From the IMG/VR virus record IMGVR_UViG_3300003322_000571, positions 286,090 through 350,089 of that record: a stretch of 64,000 nucleotides of DNA. One strand, written 5' to 3'. The stretch's first letter is position 1, and each line of letters starts with the position of its first letter. A program made the position numbers and the translations under genes. Shown in pieces: positions 18,367 through 63,464 of this stretch. The notes under the pieces are model-generated. The model ran no database searches and was not told the DNA's origin. It saw only the letters and a list, made by a program, of their open reading frames with translations.

Positions 18367-18449
18367 TGGTTCTCCTTTGCTCTGTACGAAACTATTTACG
18401 CTGGAGAAATAGCAGTGATCTTTACCCGTATACCCAGGGACCGGAAATG

Positions 18450-18473
18450 AAGGAAGGCGCCGAAGCGCCTTCC
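18450..18473 (-). terminator. GC-rich hairpin ending tmRNA transcript
   Basis: AGGAAGGCGC-TTCG-GCGCCTTCCT. Confidence 0.7.
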
Positions 18474-18795
18474 TATGATACTGTTGTTATCGGGGTATCA
18501 TGCCCTCAGTCAAGCATTAAGCTGCGAGACGGAAGTTACCTTCATTTGCATTTAGGTTGTTTTCTTGAGTTACGGTCTTCGCCACCGGCATGCGCCATCC
18601 ATCTCAGTAACTCTGTCGAAACCAGGGCAGGCCCATGACAGAAGATTCAACGCTACGTTACTTTTCGAGGGCCTAGGTTCCCTTTAACCGTTTCACGCAG
18701 CACTAAACCTTCTGTGGTGGACCTGGCGGGAATCGAACCCGCGTCCAAAATCCTTCAACATCAGTCGAATTACATGCTTCATCTGCTTGCGCAGA
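18450..18795 (-). ncRNA. ssrA: circularly permuted (two-piece) tmRNA; tag ANEGNFRLAA
   Basis: acceptor piece ...GACGCGGGTTCGATTCCCGCCAGGTCCACCA (ends 18715) precedes coding piece GGGCCTGCCCTGGTTTCGAC (starts 18634); 7-bp acceptor stem with G3-U; tag codons 18549-18517. Confidence 0.93.
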
Positions 18796-18827
18796 TACGT
18801 CTATTTAAGCATAGAACCCTAAAACTA

Positions 18828-23394: not shown

Positions 23395-24477
23395 TTAGTT
23401 GTCAACTTCGAATCCCGTGAGGCCCTCTTTCAAGCCGTTTGGAATAACCTTTTGCCCCATCATCCAGTGTTGGGTCGTTTGAATATGATTAGCTCGGACG
23501 TATTTGCCAACCATTGATTTGAACTGACTGTAGTGGAAAGGCTCGTCAACGCGTATGACGTAGCCTTCAATTTCGCCACCAGCAGCTTTTCGTTCTTTCT
23601 CGAGTTTGGCGTAGATACTTTCGATCTTTTGACGATCATATTCACCCCAGTAAATGACTGGGCACGGTTTAATACCCAGCAACTGGAACCATTCCAGTTG
23701 TTGAGTCCAATCAAGCATCACATTCTTATCGTTCCATACGGCGAATCCGTATGCGTACGTTTCCAAATCTTCATACTTGATCGAATGCTTTGCGTACACG
23801 TTTTCAACGTTAATACGCCATCCTTCGGGAATATCTCCTTGAATCCGGCCGTGCAAGGCACGAACCCAGTTTCGAGAAGGATGCCCTCCAGATGTTACAC
23901 TACGTGCATGAATATGATCATTATACATCGTAGTGTTTTCACCATCAAGTTTCTCCATCACAACGACGCGTTTACCGTTGAAGACGTTAACATCAGGCAT
24001 CATCCGGTCGTCACTGTGCATACCAGGACTCCACGGCAGATGATACGTCCGTGGGTACTTGACATGTTGGACGAACAGTCCAAGAACACCGCCCTTGTCG
24101 AGGATCTTTTGAACACTTTCGTCTTCAAACAGGTCACCACGGAGACGAGTTCCGTTATCCATGATAATATTACCCCACTTGTCATACACTTGATCCTCGT
24201 ACAGATGAGGTGGCAAGACGGGTTTGGTAATACCAAGTAGTGCTCTGATATTTTCAACAGAGAACGTGTCATGAGTTGTCATTTCACATTCAAGATGATG
24301 TTCCTCGCAGACGGAAGCACCATTGTTCAAATAGTAGCCGCCGTCAGGGAAGAGTCGTCGTTCGAGAATGTGATGTGCATCGACTGCAGGTTTATCGCAG
24401 AAGATGCAAGTGTGTTTGTCACGTGCGAACACACCTTCGCGGAATTGATCCCGCGTAAGGAGTTTTGTTCCATCCAT
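23395..24477 (-). CDS. HNH-like domain fused to ATP-dependent RNA ligase (Rnl2-like)
   Basis: CIFC..DAHHILERR..NGASVCEEHH, then KYPRTYHLPWSPG, EKLDGEN, EGYVIR, KYVR. Confidence 0.8.
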   Translation of the reverse strand: MDGTKLLTRDQFREGVFARDKHTCIFCDKPAVDAHHILERRLFPDGGYYLNNGASVCEEHHLECEMTTHDTFSVENIRALLGITKPVLPPHLYEDQVYDKWGNIIMDNGTRLRGDLFEDESVQKILDKGGVLGLFVQHVKYPRTYHLPWSPGMHSDDRMMPDVNVFNGKRVVVMEKLDGENTTMYNDHIHARSVTSGGHPSRNWVRALHGRIQGDIPEGWRINVENVYAKHSIKYEDLETYAYGFAVWNDKNVMLDWTQQLEWFQLLGIKPCPVIYWGEYDRQKIESIYAKLEKERKAAGGEIEGYVIRVDEPFHYSQFKSMVGKYVRANHIQTTQHWMMGQKVIPNGLKEGLTGFEVDN

Positions 24478-24478
24478 T

Positions 24479-24691
24479 TTAGTAATCTCTATAGTCGTGC
24501 TCAGACGTACAGTTATTCTGTGCCTTAGCGTCGTTATATGCACAACTCCAAATTGAAGCAACTAGTACGCCGAGTATTACGAATGGCATGCTGTCTGACG
24601 CATAGACGCATACAGCAACGATCGCACCAATTATAATAGCCAGTACAATTAGATAAACTGTGGCTTGGACAGCAGCTTTTTTATCCATCAC
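24479..24691 (-). CDS. small two-TM membrane protein
   Basis: hydrophobic 70 aa ORF. Confidence 0.55.
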   Translation of the reverse strand: MMDKKAAVQATVYLIVLAIIIGAIVAVCVYASDSMPFVILGVLVASIWSCAYNDAKAQNNCTSEHDYRDY

Positions 24692-41762: not shown

Positions 41763-42803
41763 ATGTCTTACAAGTACGACTTCCTCGTATTCATCGGCCG
41801 TTTCGAGCCATTCCATGTTGGCCACCTCCAGGTCATTCAATCTGCACTAAACCAAGCACAGAACGTAATTGTTCTTGTTGGCAGCAGCAATCAACCTCGA
41901 ACAGAAAAGAATCCGTTCACGTACGATGAACGTGTATCGATGATTTACTGGTCTTTGGAGGACTTGAATCCTGACCTTTCAGGTCGTGTCGAGGTAGTTC
42001 CTCTTCGTGACCAGAAGTATAATGACCAGAAATGGGCAGTTAACGTCCAGTCGATTGTTGATCACCGCGTCAAGTTCGTAACCCAAGGTGTGCAACGCAG
42101 TGCACGAGTTGGCTTGATTGGCCACACCAAGGATGAAAGCTCGTATTACCTGAAGATGTTTCCGCAGTGGGATCTGGTGGAACACGAGATGAACGAGGAA
42201 ATCAACGCAACTGATCTTCGTCGCTTGATCTACGAAGGTAAGAGTTTGAAGTTCCTGCAAGGTGTCGTGCCTCCAGCAGTTCACAGTCTTATCGAATCGT
42301 TCGTCAAGACACCTGAGTATCAATTGCTTGTCTCTGAGTACGAGATGATCAAGAAGTACAAGAAAGCATGGGAAGTCGCGCCATATCCACCGATTTTCGT
42401 CACTACCGATGCAATCGTTGTTCAGTCTGGTCACGTGCTATTGGTCGAGCGAGGTGCTGCACCAGGTAAAGGATTGTGGGCGTTGCCGGGTGGTTTCTTG
42501 GAGCAGAACTTGACTGTTCAACAGAACATGATTAAGGAGCTGCGTGAGGAAACGAAGCTGAAAGTGCCTGAGCCAGTATTGATTGGTAATATCAGGCAGT
42601 GGCGTGTGTTTGATCGCCCTGATCGCAGTGCTCGTGGACGTACAGTGACGCACGCAGCTCACATTGAACTTCCTGCTGGACCTCTTCCCCTTGTTAAGGG
42701 AGGCGACGATGCAGCGAAAGCACGGTGGGTGCCAATCGCAGAACTGCGCGAAGATAATATGTTCGAGGATCACTGGCACATCTTGATGCACTTCCTTGGA
42801 TAA
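41763..42803 (+). CDS. nadM: bifunctional NMN adenylyltransferase / ADP-ribose pyrophosphatase (NadM-Nudix)
   Basis: IGRFEPFHVGH, Nudix box PGGFLE...RELREET, GGDDAAKARW, FEDH. Confidence 0.94.
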   Translation: MSYKYDFLVFIGRFEPFHVGHLQVIQSALNQAQNVIVLVGSSNQPRTEKNPFTYDERVSMIYWSLEDLNPDLSGRVEVVPLRDQKYNDQKWAVNVQSIVDHRVKFVTQGVQRSARVGLIGHTKDESSYYLKMFPQWDLVEHEMNEEINATDLRRLIYEGKSLKFLQGVVPPAVHSLIESFVKTPEYQLLVSEYEMIKKYKKAWEVAPYPPIFVTTDAIVVQSGHVLLVERGAAPGKGLWALPGGFLEQNLTVQQNMIKELREETKLKVPEPVLIGNIRQWRVFDRPDRSARGRTVTHAAHIELPAGPLPLVKGGDDAAKARWVPIAELREDNMFEDHWHILMHFLG

Positions 42804-42808
42804 CCAAC

Positions 42809-42836
42809 AAAGGGGCTGTATGCCCCTTTTCTTTTT
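42809..42836 (+). terminator. intrinsic terminator
   Basis: GGGGC-TGTAT-GCCCC-TTTT. Confidence 0.75.
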
Positions 42837-42892
42837 GCTTTACATTAAGGTTACGTTGTTGTAACATAGTGTTTTCAATTACGGAGCCTTAA

Positions 42893-43345
42893 ATGGACTA
42901 TTTGGTTGGTATTGCAATGGTTGTGATGTTGTTCATCGCATGTATTCACATCGTTGCACAACTCAGCTTGGAAGACAAAGCACAGCGATGGAATCCCGTT
43001 GCAGCCCGTTACCGCAGTGCTGGAATGCAATTGATTTGTTTCACAGCACTCGCGTTTGTTCTGTTCGGTAGCCGGATGTTCCTTCGTCCCGACGTGTCGA
43101 TTGCGTACAGTGACATTGAAATCGGCGTGTACAAAAATGTCACCCAAAATGACAAGTTGCAAGACGTAATCGAAACGAAGACAATCGCAGGTTGTCAGGT
43201 CACTTTGAAAAAGACGTATCCTTTGTTCGTCACCATTGGATCGGATACCAAAGAGATCAAGTACAAGCTCCCTTGTGATCGACTTGCACCTGAGATGAAG
43301 ACTGACATCGCAAGTGTCGTCAGCTATCTCAAAGAAGAGAAGTAA
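42893..43345 (+). CDS. hypothetical two-TM membrane protein
   Basis: GGAG RBS, two hydrophobic helices. Confidence 0.7.
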   Translation: MDYLVGIAMVVMLFIACIHIVAQLSLEDKAQRWNPVAARYRSAGMQLICFTALAFVLFGSRMFLRPDVSIAYSDIEIGVYKNVTQNDKLQDVIETKTIAGCQVTLKKTYPLFVTIGSDTKEIKYKLPCDRLAPEMKTDIASVVSYLKEEK

Positions 43346-43351
43346 TGATTG

Positions 43352-43381
43352 TTGACATGTTGAGGGTAACGCATATATAGT
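43352..43381 (+). promoter_or_regulatory. sigma70-type promoter
   Basis: TTGACA-18-TATAGT. Confidence 0.65.
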
Positions 43382-43452
43382 TCTCTCAATGTTGAACAAA
43401 GCGCTCTTAATTGAGCGCTGCTTTCAAATTAAGTTGGTCAATTTTACCCTTG

Positions 43453-43481
43453 TTGACTTAATTTGAAAGCAGTGATAAAGT
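43453..43481 (+). promoter_or_regulatory. sigma70-type promoter for large ncRNA
   Basis: TTGACT-17-TAAAGT. Confidence 0.6.
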
Positions 43482-43487
43482 TCACTC

Positions 43488-44425
43488 ATCGATTCAAACA
43501 ACGAAGTTAATTCAGCGATGTTTGATCAAAGCCAAGCTGTGAAGGGACTGGTTCGATTCCAGGTGTGAGTAACAGAAGCTCTATCAAGGACGGAGCGTCA
43601 TTGTTTGGTACGTTCTTTACAATTCAAGATTTGGGGCATAGCCCGGATAACTCCAGTGATGGAGCCAAAGCCTTAATGCTACATTATGGCGCCAGAAATG
43701 GTCAATCTATGCAAGCTCAGTTCTCTCCAGAAATGGAGGCTTCGTCGGGTTATCTGGCGGAGATAACTAGGAAATGAGTGTTGTGGAAAGAACACGAGGT
43801 CAAGTGCCACGCAAGTGGGAACACAACTGAGTGGAAAGCTGGGTGGTACCGGCTTCACAACAAACCAAACTCATCAGTAGGTAAGAACAAGAGTAGTGTC
43901 AATGTCCAAGCCGGCAAGCGAGGGCTATGATGCAGTTTGAGAGGTTAGTGGTGTGTGAAACATCATTGGTCTTGAAAAACAGTTGAGTAAGCGGCAGCTG
44001 AAAGACATGGAGGTGTGTTGTATTTTGGTGGTCAAAAGCCATCGAAGCAACTGGACGCACACATCTTCGTAGCGATTTCCGGTTAAAAACCGGGTAATTC
44101 ACGGTTTATGAATATCTTTAACGCAAAAGTTGCGTCCGGTGTTGTGTGAAAGTGGCTTAATTCTGTGGCAGCAATGTAACACAGACGTCTGAAGCTCGCA
44201 AGGCAGAGGATGTTGAAAGTGAGTCGCACGTTTGGCTAGGCATAGTCGAGCGGTAGACAAACTTCGAATAGCACAACGCGACGAGGTAACCGCCAACCTC
44301 TAAATAAGGCAGTCATGCAAGGTACTCTCATGAGAGAGTGGATAAGTGTAGAACCAATGGTGTAGCAGCCAAAGGATAATGACACAAAAGTCTTGTACCA
44401 ACCGATGTAATCTCAGTCGTTTGAC
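43488..44425 (+). ncRNA. large (~940 nt) ornate noncoding RNA (GOLLD/ROOL-like class candidate)
   Basis: no credible ORF between promoter and terminator; many short hairpins (GCAA, GAAA and ATGA loops) and a T-arm at 43548-43563. Confidence 0.7.
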
Positions 44426-44464
44426 CTAACCGAACAGCATTCTGTGTTGTTCGGTTAGTCTTTT
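44426..44464 (+). terminator. terminator closing large ncRNA
   Basis: CTAACCGAACAGCA/TGTTGTTCGGTTAG 14-bp stem then TCTTTT. Confidence 0.75.
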
Positions 44465-44476
44465 ACAGATACGTAT

Positions 44477-44767
44477 ATGAACTTCGACAACATCCGAAAG
44501 GCGTGGCGTCGAGCAAAAAGCTTCAAGCTGGTCGGCAGTGTACAATTCACACCGTACAATCCCGTTGGAGCTGAAATCGCAGCAGCTAACTACTGCTTGT
44601 TGATCGACGCTGAAGGCGATCTTGTTGATGACTTAGTCCTCTTCGATAGTTGGGCTCAAAGCATTAACCGTGCATGTGATGCACGAATGATCGTCGATAG
44701 TCCAGACATTCAACACTCTCTTCGGTGCTTTGCTTCAAGGCTCTGGGTTGATCCTGAACGTCTTTGA
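44477..44767 (+). CDS. hypothetical protein
   Basis: 96 aa ATG ORF. Confidence 0.55.
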   Translation: MNFDNIRKAWRRAKSFKLVGSVQFTPYNPVGAEIAAANYCLLIDAEGDLVDDLVLFDSWAQSINRACDARMIVDSPDIQHSLRCFASRLWVDPERL

Positions 44768-44815
44768 CTAAATAGAAAGTCGGGAGACCCACTACCCTAA
44801 GTGTGGAACTTTAAA

Positions 44816-44942
44816 TACAAATGTGGTGAGCAATCACCGCCGAATGCAAACCCAACCACGTAAGTGGATGAAAGCTTCGATTACCGTAGTTAAATGGGAC
44901 TACGGAGTAGGTCTGGTTCGGAATCGCTGCCAGACATTTGTA
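44816..44942 (+). ncRNA. unassigned multi-hairpin RNA
   Basis: closing TACAAATGT/ACATTTGTA plus GCAA and GTAA tetraloop hairpins. Confidence 0.5.
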
Positions 44943-44949
44943 TACGATT

Positions 44950-45018
44950 GCGGGCGAGTGTGATGGAAGCACGTAAGGCTCATAACCTTAAGGACCTGTT
45001 CGATTCAGTGGCCACGCA
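44950..45018 (+). pseudogene. degenerate tRNA-like element, CAT anticodon
   Basis: TAAGG-CTCATAA-CCTTA arm and TTCGATT loop, bulged acceptor/T stems. Confidence 0.5.
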
Positions 45019-45114
45019 TCAAATAACATGACTTCGAGTGTTGGCATAGTGCGAATGCTCATATAACCGACTTTAATTTGCGTCCTTAGTCGGTGGGCGG
45101 TAAAAGTAGGAATC

Positions 45115-46011
45115 ATGATGTATAGCAACAAGCTAGCCGTCGCTGTGAAAGCGAGCGGCAAGGTTCTCCGTGAATTCGGAGATAAAGTGTACGTGCCATT
45201 CGGCAGTGAATACACAATCCTGATCAAGAACCTCAACAGTGTTCGTGTCCAAGTTCGTGTGACGATCGACGGAACTGACGCTACTGAAGGAACTTCTCTT
45301 GTCATCGGGGCAAATCAAGAACTAGAACTGCAACGGTTCATTAAGAACGGTAACCTCCGTGAGGGCAACCGATTCAAGTTCATCGAACGCACTTCCAAGA
45401 TTGAAAATGGACCGCGCGGTGCGAAGGTTGACGATGGTTTGATTCGTATTGAGTACGAATTTGAAAAGGTCGTTCAGCCGATCGAACCTCTAGTTTTCAA
45501 AGAAAAATGGATCAAGACGTACGAAGTTGAACGTCCCAATCCGTGGAAGACGTACCCTGACGTATGGTGCAGCACAAATAATCAGATCATCGGTTCGATC
45601 GCAAATGGCGAAGGGATGCTGATGAATACGTCGGTGACGAATGCGAATTATCTTGCTGTTGCACAAAACACTGCATCCGTTCAACCTGCGTCGTCGATCA
45701 CGATCACGACGACTGCACCGGTAAAAACCAAAGGTGCTCTCCGTTGTGCTACAAAACCACAATTGAATGAAACAGGTATTACCGTTGCTGGCAGTAAGAG
45801 CGAACAGCAATTCAGAACAGTTTCATCATTCCCTGTGGAGTCAACAACGCATTCACTTGTTATCCACTTGCTTGGTGAGACAGAGACAGGAAAGTCGGTA
45901 AGGGAAGCTGTAACCGTTAAGGCAAAGCCGAAATGCACGACTTGCGGACACTTGAACAAAGCTACTGCTAAGTTCTGTACAGAATGTGGAACCGCACTAG
46001 AGATCATCTAA
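45115..46011 (+). CDS. hypothetical protein with C-terminal double zinc ribbon
   Basis: CTTCG...FCTECG; conserved-looking beta-rich N-terminus. Confidence 0.8.
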   Translation: MMYSNKLAVAVKASGKVLREFGDKVYVPFGSEYTILIKNLNSVRVQVRVTIDGTDATEGTSLVIGANQELELQRFIKNGNLREGNRFKFIERTSKIENGPRGAKVDDGLIRIEYEFEKVVQPIEPLVFKEKWIKTYEVERPNPWKTYPDVWCSTNNQIIGSIANGEGMLMNTSVTNANYLAVAQNTASVQPASSITITTTAPVKTKGALRCATKPQLNETGITVAGSKSEQQFRTVSSFPVESTTHSLVIHLLGETETGKSVREAVTVKAKPKCTTCGHLNKATAKFCTECGTALEII

Positions 46012-46778: not shown

Positions 46779-46855
46779 GCTCTCTTAGCTCAATTGGTTA
46801 GAGCGGCGGTCTCTAAAACCGACGGCTACGGGTTCGAATCCCGTAGAGGGCACCA
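46779..46855 (+). tRNA. amber suppressor tRNA (anticodon CTA)
   Basis: full cloverleaf, loop CT-CTA-AA, encoded ACCA. Confidence 0.88.
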
Positions 46856-50756: not shown

Positions 50757-51884
50757 ATGGAACTGTACAATCAACTGATGGCGCTGACGCAAGATGGCGA
50801 TGCTTTCTACTTCCAGGACTTCGAACTGGATCGTGTGAAGTATCGTATCTTCAACTACCGTCTCGCTTCGTACAGCGACTTCCTGAAGCCAGGCGCTCTG
50901 GAGTGCCGTGGCATCATGTTTGATATCACCGACGGTATTGCTGAACTTGTTGCACGTCCGATGCAGAAGTTCTTCAATCTGAACGAAAATCCGATGACGA
51001 TGAACCTCGATCTGTCGCAAGTCGACACGGTTGAGCTGAAGGCTGACGGTTCGTTGATGTCAACGTTCATTCATTGGACTGATTCTGGTCCGATGCTTCG
51101 TCTCAAGTCGAAGGGTTCGCTGTTCTCTGAACAAGCAATCGACTCGCTGAAGTGGCTCACTGACCACGATCCGGAACTGAAGCATCATCTGTTCATGGTG
51201 ACGCTCGATGGCTACACGGTCAATCTCGAGTGGTGCGCTCCGTTCAACCGGATCGTGATTGGTTATGAAAAGCCGCACCTGAAAATCCTGAACGTTCGCA
51301 AGATGGAAACCGGCGAATACATGCCGCGTGTTGTGATCGAAGATCGTTTCCGTAACCCGGATTGGATCATCGACCGCGTCCGTACAGACGGCCTCAACAC
51401 GGCTGATTTCGTCAAGTCGATCCCTGCGCTGCAAGACGACATTGAAGGTTACGTGTGCCGTATCGGTGACCTGTGGTTCAAGGTCAAGACCGAGAAGTAC
51501 ATGTCGCTTCACCACGCGAAGGATTCTGTCAACAATCCACGTCGTCTGTTTGAAGCAATCATCGACGAAGGAATCGATGACCTTCGCTCAATGTTTGCAC
51601 AAGATGCACTCGCGATGAAGTTGATCGACGAGATGCAAGAGAAGGTTACACGGATGTACAACAGTGTTGTTCGTCAAGTGGAAGACTACTACAGTGCGAA
51701 CAAGGCGAAGGAACGCAAGGATTATGCGATCGGTGCACAGACGCTGTCGATTGACGGTGTCAAGCTGATGTCACTCGCGATGAACCTGTACATCGGCCGT
51801 GATCCTGGTTTCAAGGACTTCCTCAAGGGGAAGTACAAGGAACTCGGCTTCAAAGATACGTCGGTTGACAAGAAAGAAGACTGA
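50757..51884 (+). CDS. RNA ligase 1 (T4 Rnl1-like)
   Basis: IFNYRLASY, LECRG, PMQKFFNLNE, KADGSL, EGYV, WFKVKT. Confidence 0.92.
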   Translation: MELYNQLMALTQDGDAFYFQDFELDRVKYRIFNYRLASYSDFLKPGALECRGIMFDITDGIAELVARPMQKFFNLNENPMTMNLDLSQVDTVELKADGSLMSTFIHWTDSGPMLRLKSKGSLFSEQAIDSLKWLTDHDPELKHHLFMVTLDGYTVNLEWCAPFNRIVIGYEKPHLKILNVRKMETGEYMPRVVIEDRFRNPDWIIDRVRTDGLNTADFVKSIPALQDDIEGYVCRIGDLWFKVKTEKYMSLHHAKDSVNNPRRLFEAIIDEGIDDLRSMFAQDALAMKLIDEMQEKVTRMYNSVVRQVEDYYSANKAKERKDYAIGAQTLSIDGVKLMSLAMNLYIGRDPGFKDFLKGKYKELGFKDTSVDKKED

Positions 51885-56652: not shown

Positions 56653-56829
56653 TGTGTTTAAGACTGTCGCACGCCAAAAGGCACAGTGGGTTAAGTCTTA
56701 CTTCATGTCTTTACTTGTTGGCGCAAGTATAACATGTTGTCCATTAGTACAGTGGTAGTACGTCGCCTATAACGGCGAAGACGCGGGTTCGATTCCCGTA
56801 TGGAATTTTTGACGACAGCCTTAAACACA
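56653..56829 (+). ncRNA. end-clamped RNA containing a tRNA-like domain (56740-56804)
   Basis: 17-bp terminal helix (1 mismatch); D, anticodon-like (6-nt loop) and T arms inside. Confidence 0.6.
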
Positions 56830-57834: not shown

Positions 57835-57916
57835 GGATCATTATACTCCTATGGACGGAGACCAGATTGTAATCCTGGTGCCTTTGGCTGGGTAGGTTCG
57901 ATTCCTACATGATCCA
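57835..57916 (+). tRNA. tRNA-Tyr(GTA)
   Basis: loop TTGTAAT, variable arm. Confidence 0.75.
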
Positions 57917-57926
57917 CTAAGATGTT

Positions 57927-58124: not shown

Positions 58125-58196
58125 GGGGAGGTCGTTTAGCGTTCAAGACACTGGCCACTAAAGCCAGCGACGATGGTTCGAATCCATCCCTCCCCA
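58125..58196 (+). tRNA. tRNA with CTA anticodon and non-canonical A33
   Basis: CTGGC-CACTAAA-GCCAG; full cloverleaf; no CCA. Confidence 0.65.
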
Positions 58197-58202
58197 CAAA
58201 TT

Positions 58203-59272: not shown

Positions 59273-59345
59273 CCCCTCCTAGCTAATCTGGTGAGAGCGA
59301 CCGTTTGAAACGCAGTAGAGACTGGTTCGATTCCAGTGGTGGGGA
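59273..59345 (+). tRNA. tRNA-Phe(GAA)
   Basis: loop TTGAAAC; mismatches in stems. Confidence 0.7.
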
Positions 59346-60267: not shown

Positions 60268-60347
60268 CCCTTCGTGGCAAATGTAAATTGGTACAGCTAC
60301 TACGTTCAGACCGTAGGCTTTTGTCGGTTCGAATCCGACCGAAGGGA
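60268..60347 (+). tRNA. tRNA-Leu(CAG)
   Basis: CTACG-TTCAGAC-CGTAG. Confidence 0.88.
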
Positions 60348-63384: not shown

Positions 63385-63464
63385 GTCCTCTTGGCTAGGG
63401 TAAATTGGTACAGCCACTACGCTCAAACCGTAGGCTCTTGCGGGTTCGAATCCCGCAGAGGACA
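63385..63464 (+). tRNA. tRNA-Leu(CAA)
   Basis: CTACG-CTCAAAC-CGTAG. Confidence 0.88.

Follow-up and report, generated by a model that had tools for sequence, protein, structure and literature searches.

A divergent GOLLD RNA encoded in an ORF-poor stretch of an uncultured jumbo phage genome

Introduction

The question raised by positions 43488–44464 of the DNA analysed here is what kind of gene occupies a stretch of a phage genome that holds no plausible coding sequence. This DNA, referred to as the window, comprises 64,000 nt and forms the last 64 kb of IMGVR_UViG_3300003322_000571 (350,089 bp), a viral contig of an uncultured jumbo phage. An initial annotation had read the stretch as a structured RNA of ~940 nt bracketed by its own promoter and terminator and had offered two identities for it, either a relative of the giant phage-associated RNAs GOLLD and ROOL or a new class of giant RNA. 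The analysis described below indicates that the stretch is almost certainly a phage gene for a non-coding GOLLD RNA of ~810 nt. The copy is full-length, divergent and new, and it belongs to a family that has already been described and structurally solved rather than to a new class. The family thereby gains a divergent member from an uncultured jumbo phage of 350 kb.

GOLLD RNAs are associated with phages and with tRNA islands, carry tRNAs in a linker and have been reported in a ribosome pull-down (PMC12286853). The member env-38, which originates from a marine metagenome and is 833 nt long, forms a 14-mer cage solved by cryo-EM (PDB 9MEE); residues 1–420 make up its 5' domain and residues 421–833 its 3' domain, and the linker is located inside the solved cage (PMC12286853). 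A second cage is that of the S. agalactiae GOLLD, which is 700 nt long and forms a 12-mer (PDB 9L0R) as summarised in PMC12990946. ROOL, a large non-coding RNA that is likewise associated with phages and tRNAs, also forms RNA-only cages (PMC12286853), but its sequence and fold are unrelated to those of the RNA in the window.

Identification of the GOLLD 3' domain

An Rfam scan of the whole window returned a match to GOLLD (RF02032) on the plus strand at 44008–44419. The match spans the entire model (positions 1–416 of 416), and its 207.3 bits (E 4e-57) exceed the gathering score of 150. RF02032 describes the conserved 3' half of GOLLD only, that is, the 'ring' domain with P14–P27 in the published numbering. 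The first guess of the initial annotation was therefore right as far as GOLLD is concerned, the locus holding a divergent member and not a new class, whereas ROOL, which it had named alongside, does not apply: in 43300–44600 neither ROOL nor OLE, the other family that it had singled out for an Rfam check, is matched even at E ≤ 1. Apart from chance miRNA-type matches on the leader hairpin, no other Rfam family appears in this interval at E ≤ 1 either. In terms of annotation the locus is ordinary, as this GOLLD is detected by a standard Rfam scan.

The alignment to RF02032 recovers the architecture of the 3' domain, with the first long hairpin, the long-range helix that encloses P19–P21 (nine of its ten pairs are formed) and the multi-stem 3' end. 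The 3'-terminal loop motif GTAATCTCAG is conserved, and the terminal loop GUAAUCUCAG is identical to the RF02032 consensus. Every hairpin listed in the initial annotation is present in its place, and two of them (TCTGTG/CACAGA, CTCTC-ATGA-GAGAG) coincide with consensus helices of the Rfam GOLLD model. The AUGA loop at 44333–44336, which stands in place of a GNRA-type loop, was considered as an oddity and dropped, since the loops of typical GOLLDs vary at this position too. The alignment departs from the model at positions 232–246, where a consensus hairpin is deleted, and at positions 308–324, where three inner pairs of a helix are non-standard. Just upstream of this weakened hairpin, a GAGGT is complementary by eye to an ACCTC in its enlarged loop (44283–44306, plus strand), which may perhaps represent the L22-linker pseudoknot described for env-38.

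The score of 207 bits lies well under that of typical GOLLDs (~300 bits). Divergent GOLLDs found elsewhere score between 151 and 218 bits, and the value is thus usual for the divergent group and no mark of decay.

Related GOLLD loci

Other GOLLD loci, to which L numbers are given here, were gathered from IMG/VR with a DNA pattern, from phage genomes with BLAST and from one metagenome contig, each of them being confirmed with Rfam. Closest to the window copy in sequence are L017, which lies on metagenome contig Ga0315287_10031394 and is the closest single relative, and the copies of phiCbK-type Caulobacter phages (BL57 with locus L011, phiCbK, Karma and others); the GOLLDs of Mesorhizobium, Sinorhizobium and Ruegeria phages also belong to the closest group. 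The first 3' hairpin of the window copy is nearly identical to those of BL57 and L017. In the 5' domain the window copy and L017 share 55% identity, and covarying helices are common to the group. Like the phage of the window, the phages of this group are large and tRNA-rich and often have a permuted tmRNA.

The DNA pattern shared with BL57 matched one metagenome contig and no bacterial genome. Searches with the flanking proteins returned only the window's own contig, a megablast of 20 kb against phage genomes gave no match, and the collections searched held no close relatives of the flanking genes. In the BL57 record (PQ287320) the GOLLD itself is unannotated. A CDS of this record, BL57_146c (2627–2833 of L011, a hypothetical protein of 68 aa), lies inside the stretch that aligns with the GOLLD 5' domain and is probably a false call.

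An unbranched P21 arm and a tRNA-free linker

What sets the window copy apart is found in the P21 arm and in the linker. Through the deletion of consensus positions 232–246, P21 (44211–44270, plus strand) becomes an unbranched stem with a single apical hairpin of 10 bp (44229–44252) and a GGCA loop (44239–44242). The arm folds at −22.9 kcal/mol (z = −3.75). Among eleven other GOLLDs that were folded, nine show two apical P21 hairpins, the folds of L011 and L015 being uninformative. In cmscan alignments, the consensus first P21 hairpin is matched in L006, L014, L015, L016 and L017 and is replaced by a 20-nt insertion in BL57 (L011). The closest group therefore differs from the window copy in having two P21 hairpins, as judged from folds or from cmscan alignments, where the window copy has one.

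In env-38, P21a and P21b are both present and both self-kissing between the half-shells, in contrast to the one apical hairpin of the window copy. The first P21 hairpin of env-38 carries nucleotides 656–657, the GC of the L21a self-kissing loop, according to a count by eye in the printed sequence. The S. agalactiae GOLLD, as summarised in PMC12990946, lacks P21b, and a single L21-L21 kissing loop joins its two planes; this RNA still assembles, and the presence of two P21 hairpins is not family-defining. The window copy resembles it in its unbranched P21 without P21b, and the GGCA loop contains a self-complementary GC that could, by analogy, make a kissing contact of the L21-L21 type. The two RNAs differ in other respects, since the S. 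agalactiae GOLLD as summarised there also lacks P9, P11a–c and parts of P7 and P10 and is ~100 nt shorter than the window copy, whose 5' domain is full-sized and of the alphaproteobacterial-phage type, unlike that of S. agalactiae. Furthermore, the S. agalactiae copy resides on a Firmicute chromosome and the window copy in a jumbo phage.

The variable linker (44070–44137, plus strand), which corresponds to unpaired model columns 63–136, contains two small hairpins in the window copy, CCGGTT/AACCGG and ACGCAA/TTGCGT, and neither ARAGORN nor Rfam finds a tRNA in it. In contrast, each of the linkers of L006, L011, L014, L015 and L017 has one tRNA inside, and within the closest group the Ruegeria phage copy (L016) is the only exception to this arrangement. 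GOLLD variants without single contact elements or without the embedded tRNA are useful for asking which of the contacts determine how many copies a cage contains. The window copy drops one of the two equatorial kissing hairpins, and its tRNA-free linker bears on whether the linker tRNA is needed.

The same features could be taken as stages of erosion, in which case the locus would be a decaying, non-functional relic that has a low score, has lost a P21 hairpin and the tRNA of its linker and carries a dead tRNA in its leader. Although the gap between 207 bits and the ~300 bits of typical members, the loss of model positions 232–246, the three broken pairs of one helix and the tRNA remnant upstream of the GOLLD (see below) would all suit such a relic, as would the fact that the closest relative L017 retains both P21 hairpins and the linker tRNA, we consider it improbable. 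Other divergent GOLLDs that are evidently maintained score equally low or lower (151–218 bits), and compensatory changes preserve helices in which every pair of the window sequence is formed (see the following section). Moreover, what remains of the P21 arm is not debris but forms a clean and stable hairpin of 10 bp (z −3.75), the terminator is intact, and an unbranched P21 is also present in the S. agalactiae 12-mer, which assembles, as summarised in PMC12990946. A maintained gene for a divergent GOLLD is hence the reading followed here.

Homology of the upstream half to the GOLLD 5' domain

Since RF02032 represents the 3' half only, the remaining question concerned the identity of the ~520 nt upstream of 44008. 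An nhmmer profile was built from the 500 nt before the 3' domain in five other GOLLD loci, excluding the window, and had its sole match in the 128 kb searched at 43644–44007 on the plus strand (E 1.8e-7). Similarly, a covariance model termed R1, which represents the 3'-most 80 nt of the 5' domain and was likewise derived from five other GOLLDs without the window, matches the window once, at 43931–44011, with 53.2 bits (E 5.5e-12) and with ten of ten pairs standard. In the R1 alignment of seven sequences, 98.6% of cells are paired, compared with 33–53% when the partners are slid, and nine of the ten pairs change on both sides, while none of 500 shuffles reaches any of the observed measures. For the whole 5' domain, RNAalifold applied to six sequences gives 15 pairs in four helices, 12 of the 15 being compensatory. 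The covariation among homologues that the initial annotation had anticipated for a structured RNA is thereby borne out, and conserved base-pairing is shown for at least part of the 5' domain, namely for these four helices.

Other comparisons of the folds vary in the strength of their signal. Single-sequence folds of the last 145 nt agree on one layout of three hairpins for the window, L015, L016 and L006, and L011 shows it in part. When the minimum-energy fold of the window's 5' domain is tested against L017, 70 of 127 pairs are kept versus 44–58 in slid controls, which is a weak signal. The same whole-domain test on the known 3' domain keeps 81 of 127 pairs versus 42–54 when slid, and, as even this known domain yields a moderate signal only, little weight is given to the test. 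Mixed ten-sequence MAFFT alignments gave RNAalifold 0–4 pairs because of register errors, whereas smaller and cleaner sets succeeded. With four helices backed by covariation and a weak whole-domain test, the assignment of the upstream half as a GOLLD 5' domain is, on the grounds of homology, well supported, and a helix-by-helix map is not.

The 5' domain, which forms the 'cap' of the solved cages, would accordingly extend over ~43608–44007 on the plus strand, its 5' edge lying near 43608 with an uncertainty of about ±30 nt. The motif ACGTTCTTTAC at 43610–43620 is common to typical GOLLDs, where it is located upstream of the first hairpin, and the assembling env-38 construct starts at the hairpin equivalent to 43633–43645 (positions counted by eye in the printed env-38 sequence). 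The hairpins CCAC-GCAA-GTGG and AAGCTGG/CCGGCTT lie inside the domain. Of the AGTA-containing segments, which had been noted as E-loop-like, the GAGTA segments are conserved junction motifs. Typical GOLLD 5' domains have no detectable sequence-level similarity to that of the window, and a profile of typical (~300-bit) GOLLD 5' regions alone has zero matches in the window, only the alphaproteobacterial-phage type aligning; this failure is in line with the known variability of the 5' half. As a whole, the RNA (43608–44419) folds at −258.8 kcal/mol (z = −4.3), which is better than all 20 shuffles.

The homology of the upstream half also bears on whether the locus might encode two RNAs independent of each other, one being a 5' RNA of ~500 nt (43488–44007) and the other, downstream of it, a short GOLLD that consists of the 3' domain only. 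Such an arrangement would agree with an Rfam match that begins only at 44008, with a weak promoter-like site at 43937–43966 and with the S. agalactiae 3' domain, which according to the summary in PMC12990946 oligomerises on its own in vitro, into a 10-mer. It is nonetheless very unlikely, given that at least six other GOLLD loci have a homologue of the 5' part directly before their 3' domain, that no terminator lies between the halves and that the Rfam model is known to contain the 3' half only, the 5' domain of env-38 being residues 1–420 (PMC12286853). A single GOLLD RNA of two domains is therefore preferred.

Coding potential and transcription unit

The longest stop-free run in 43488–44464 measures 83 codons, which ranks among the lowest 1.6% of values for segments of equal length in the 64 kb, and the only comparably ORF-poor part of the 64 kb is the tRNA island; the absence of plausible genes that had first drawn attention to the stretch is thus confirmed. 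Stops are distributed across all six frames of the GOLLD region, and the three longest ORFs of 43488–44464 have zero matches in Pfam. Stop-codon reassignment, considered as a cause of the ORF-free appearance in view of two tRNA-CUA genes in the window, was rejected, as none of the alternative stop-codon readings opened a long frame in 43488–44464. A new giant RNA class, the second identity initially offered, or a cluster of small-protein genes, both unrelated to GOLLD, could draw on short ORFs of 50–70 codons and otherwise only on the absence of annotated genes, and is refuted by the Rfam match across the full model (E 4e-57), by the lack of Pfam matches for the ORFs and by the stops in all six frames.

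The length of ~940 nt given initially holds for the unit from promoter to terminator, whereas the GOLLD core accounts for ~810 nt of it (~43608–44419). The terminator had been recognised correctly: the intrinsic terminator at 44426–44464 (plus strand) is strong, with a stem of 15 pairs (44426–44458) followed by TCTTTT and a fold of −22.5 kcal/mol (z = −7.7), and it begins 7 nt past the end of the GOLLD match. The promoter that had been proposed, here called P2 (43453–43481, plus strand), reads TTGACT-17-TAAAGT and has a TG upstream, but it agrees with the consensus at only 9 of 12 positions and does not by itself exceed chance. A stronger promoter-like site, P1 (43352–43381, plus strand; TTGACA-18-TATAGT, 11 of 12 consensus positions), lies 100 nt further upstream, directly 3' of the stop of the upstream 150-aa ORF, and is the best such site in 42800–45200. 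In the 2.4 kb around the GOLLD there are seven promoter-like sites versus 3.1 ± 1.3 expected, and since this is only about twice the shuffle frequency, P1 and P2 are both unproven. Transcription would start from the gene's own sigma-70-type promoter, either P2 or P1, and would stop at the terminator.

Leader and tRNA remnant

Two inverted repeats lie in the leader on the plus strand, a small hairpin, AGCGCTC/GAGCGCT (43400–43419), and a long repeat (43411–43479) with 24-nt arms at 43411–43434 and 43456–43479 that are 88% complementary. The long repeat sits between P1 and P2 and overlaps the −35 hexamer of P2, and its 19-bp stem is the chance miRNA-model match seen with Rfam. These repeats (43400–43479) could act as an operator or as a leader RNA hairpin.

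Further downstream, at 43495–43572 (plus strand), the leader contains the remnant of a decayed tRNA, which comprises a T arm (43548–43562) and a D-arm-like stretch and for which no acceptor stem is possible. The T arm had been counted among the hairpins of the giant RNA; it is real, but it is no element of that RNA. It lies upstream of the core, and the 25 nt around it show 88% identity to 59317–59341, the T arm of a tRNA-Phe located in the window; the D-arm-like stretch also aligns with this tRNA. The T-arm hairpin alone folds no better than shuffles. No tRNA is called at 43495–43572 by ARAGORN or by Rfam RF00005 at E ≤ 1, and, for want of these calls and of an acceptor stem, the T arm was rejected as part of a functional tRNA or as a tRNA-like end. 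Judged from the alignments, it is a decayed tRNA between promoter and GOLLD core and not part of the GOLLD, which fits the habit of GOLLDs of adjoining tRNAs.

Proposed assembly and role

The window RNA resembles env-38 in its layout of two domains of similar size (~400 nt for the 5' domain and ~410 nt for the 3' domain), and in both RNAs the linker separates the first 3' hairpin from the remainder of the 3' domain. Of the consensus 3' helices the window RNA lacks a single one, and it retains both the long-range helix and the terminal loop motif. A tRNA sequence adjoins both RNAs, as env-38 lies downstream of a tRNA-Met (PMC12286853) and the window copy downstream of the remnant.

By homology, the RNA would fold as two separate domains, the variable 5' domain (~43608–44007) and the conserved 3' domain (44008–44419), joined around the flexible linker, and would self-assemble without protein into a closed cage of dihedral symmetry with 12–14 copies. 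In such a cage the two caps would be made of 5' domains and the two rings of 3' domains. Contacts of the kissing-loop and A-minor types would hold the copies together, and the linker would face the interior. The published cages contain 14 copies in env-38 (PMC12286853) and 12 in S. agalactiae (as summarised in PMC12990946), and, by analogy with these, the window RNA probably assembles into a closed cage of its own. Because a full-sized 5' domain occurs together with just one P21 kissing hairpin and with a linker that lacks a tRNA, its cage might differ in copy number or closure from both the 14-mer and the 12-mer; separately, the leader tRNA might be kept as an RNase P/RNase Z handle that sets the mature 5' end. 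Both suggestions are speculative and rather unlikely.

As to the role, support of translation late in infection, by holding or scaffolding tRNAs or ribosome-associated factors, can be put forward tentatively, although it falls somewhat short of being probable. The idea derives from the gene neighbourhood, in which tRNA arrays, tmRNA and RNA-repair ligases recur, and from the reported ribosome pull-down. Several large phages that are unrelated to one another combine GOLLD with tRNA arrays, tmRNA and tRNA-repair ligases, which supports a role in sustaining translation during infection without proving it.

Genome context and the tRNA island

Consistent with the phage location of GOLLDs, the gene lies on a viral contig with phage replication genes and tRNA genes nearby. 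The proteins encoded include topoisomerase II subunits, an NAD-dependent DNA ligase, ribonucleotide reductase and a DnaB-type helicase, and an NMN adenylyltransferase-Nudix protein is encoded just upstream of the GOLLD. The window holds 24 tRNA genes, a tRNA island among them, and a tmRNA. A T4 Rnl1-type RNA ligase (50757–51884, plus strand) and a second RNA ligase (23395–24561, minus strand) share the genome arm with the GOLLD and the tRNA island. RNA ligases of the T4 Rnl1 kind repair cleaved tRNAs.

The tmRNA (18426–18807, minus strand) is of the permuted, two-piece type and encodes the tag ANEGNFRLAA. In Caulobacter phage BL57 (2147–2465 of L011, minus strand) and in Roseobacter phage DSS3P8 (2142–2528 of L016, plus strand), the GOLLD has a permuted tmRNA as its immediate neighbour. 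With a tmRNA in the window, in BL57 and in DSS3P8, GOLLD and tmRNA co-occur in several unrelated large phages.

Two tRNAs with the anticodon CUA (46779–46855 and 58125–58197, plus strand), labelled Pyl by ARAGORN, are amber suppressors. TAG ends 3 of the 48 long open frames in the window, and there is no sign of TAG recoding inside genes, ORFs merging across TAG only antisense to real genes. ARAGORN also reports a 'tRNA-???' with the four-base anticodon ataa at 56738–56807 (plus strand), which scores 44.8 bits with the Rfam tRNA model. Three cloverleaf-like elements on the plus strand (60268–60347, 63385–63464 and 57835–57917) have good acceptor, anticodon and T arms and odd D arms; they are not called at threshold by ARAGORN or Rfam and are probably unusual extra tRNA genes of the island. 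The first two of them are 81-nt repeats with 80% identity. A 21-nt inverted repeat without an Rfam family match (57921–57941/58103–58123, plus strand; 95% complementary) encloses 161 nt and is situated immediately upstream of the second tRNA-CUA gene.
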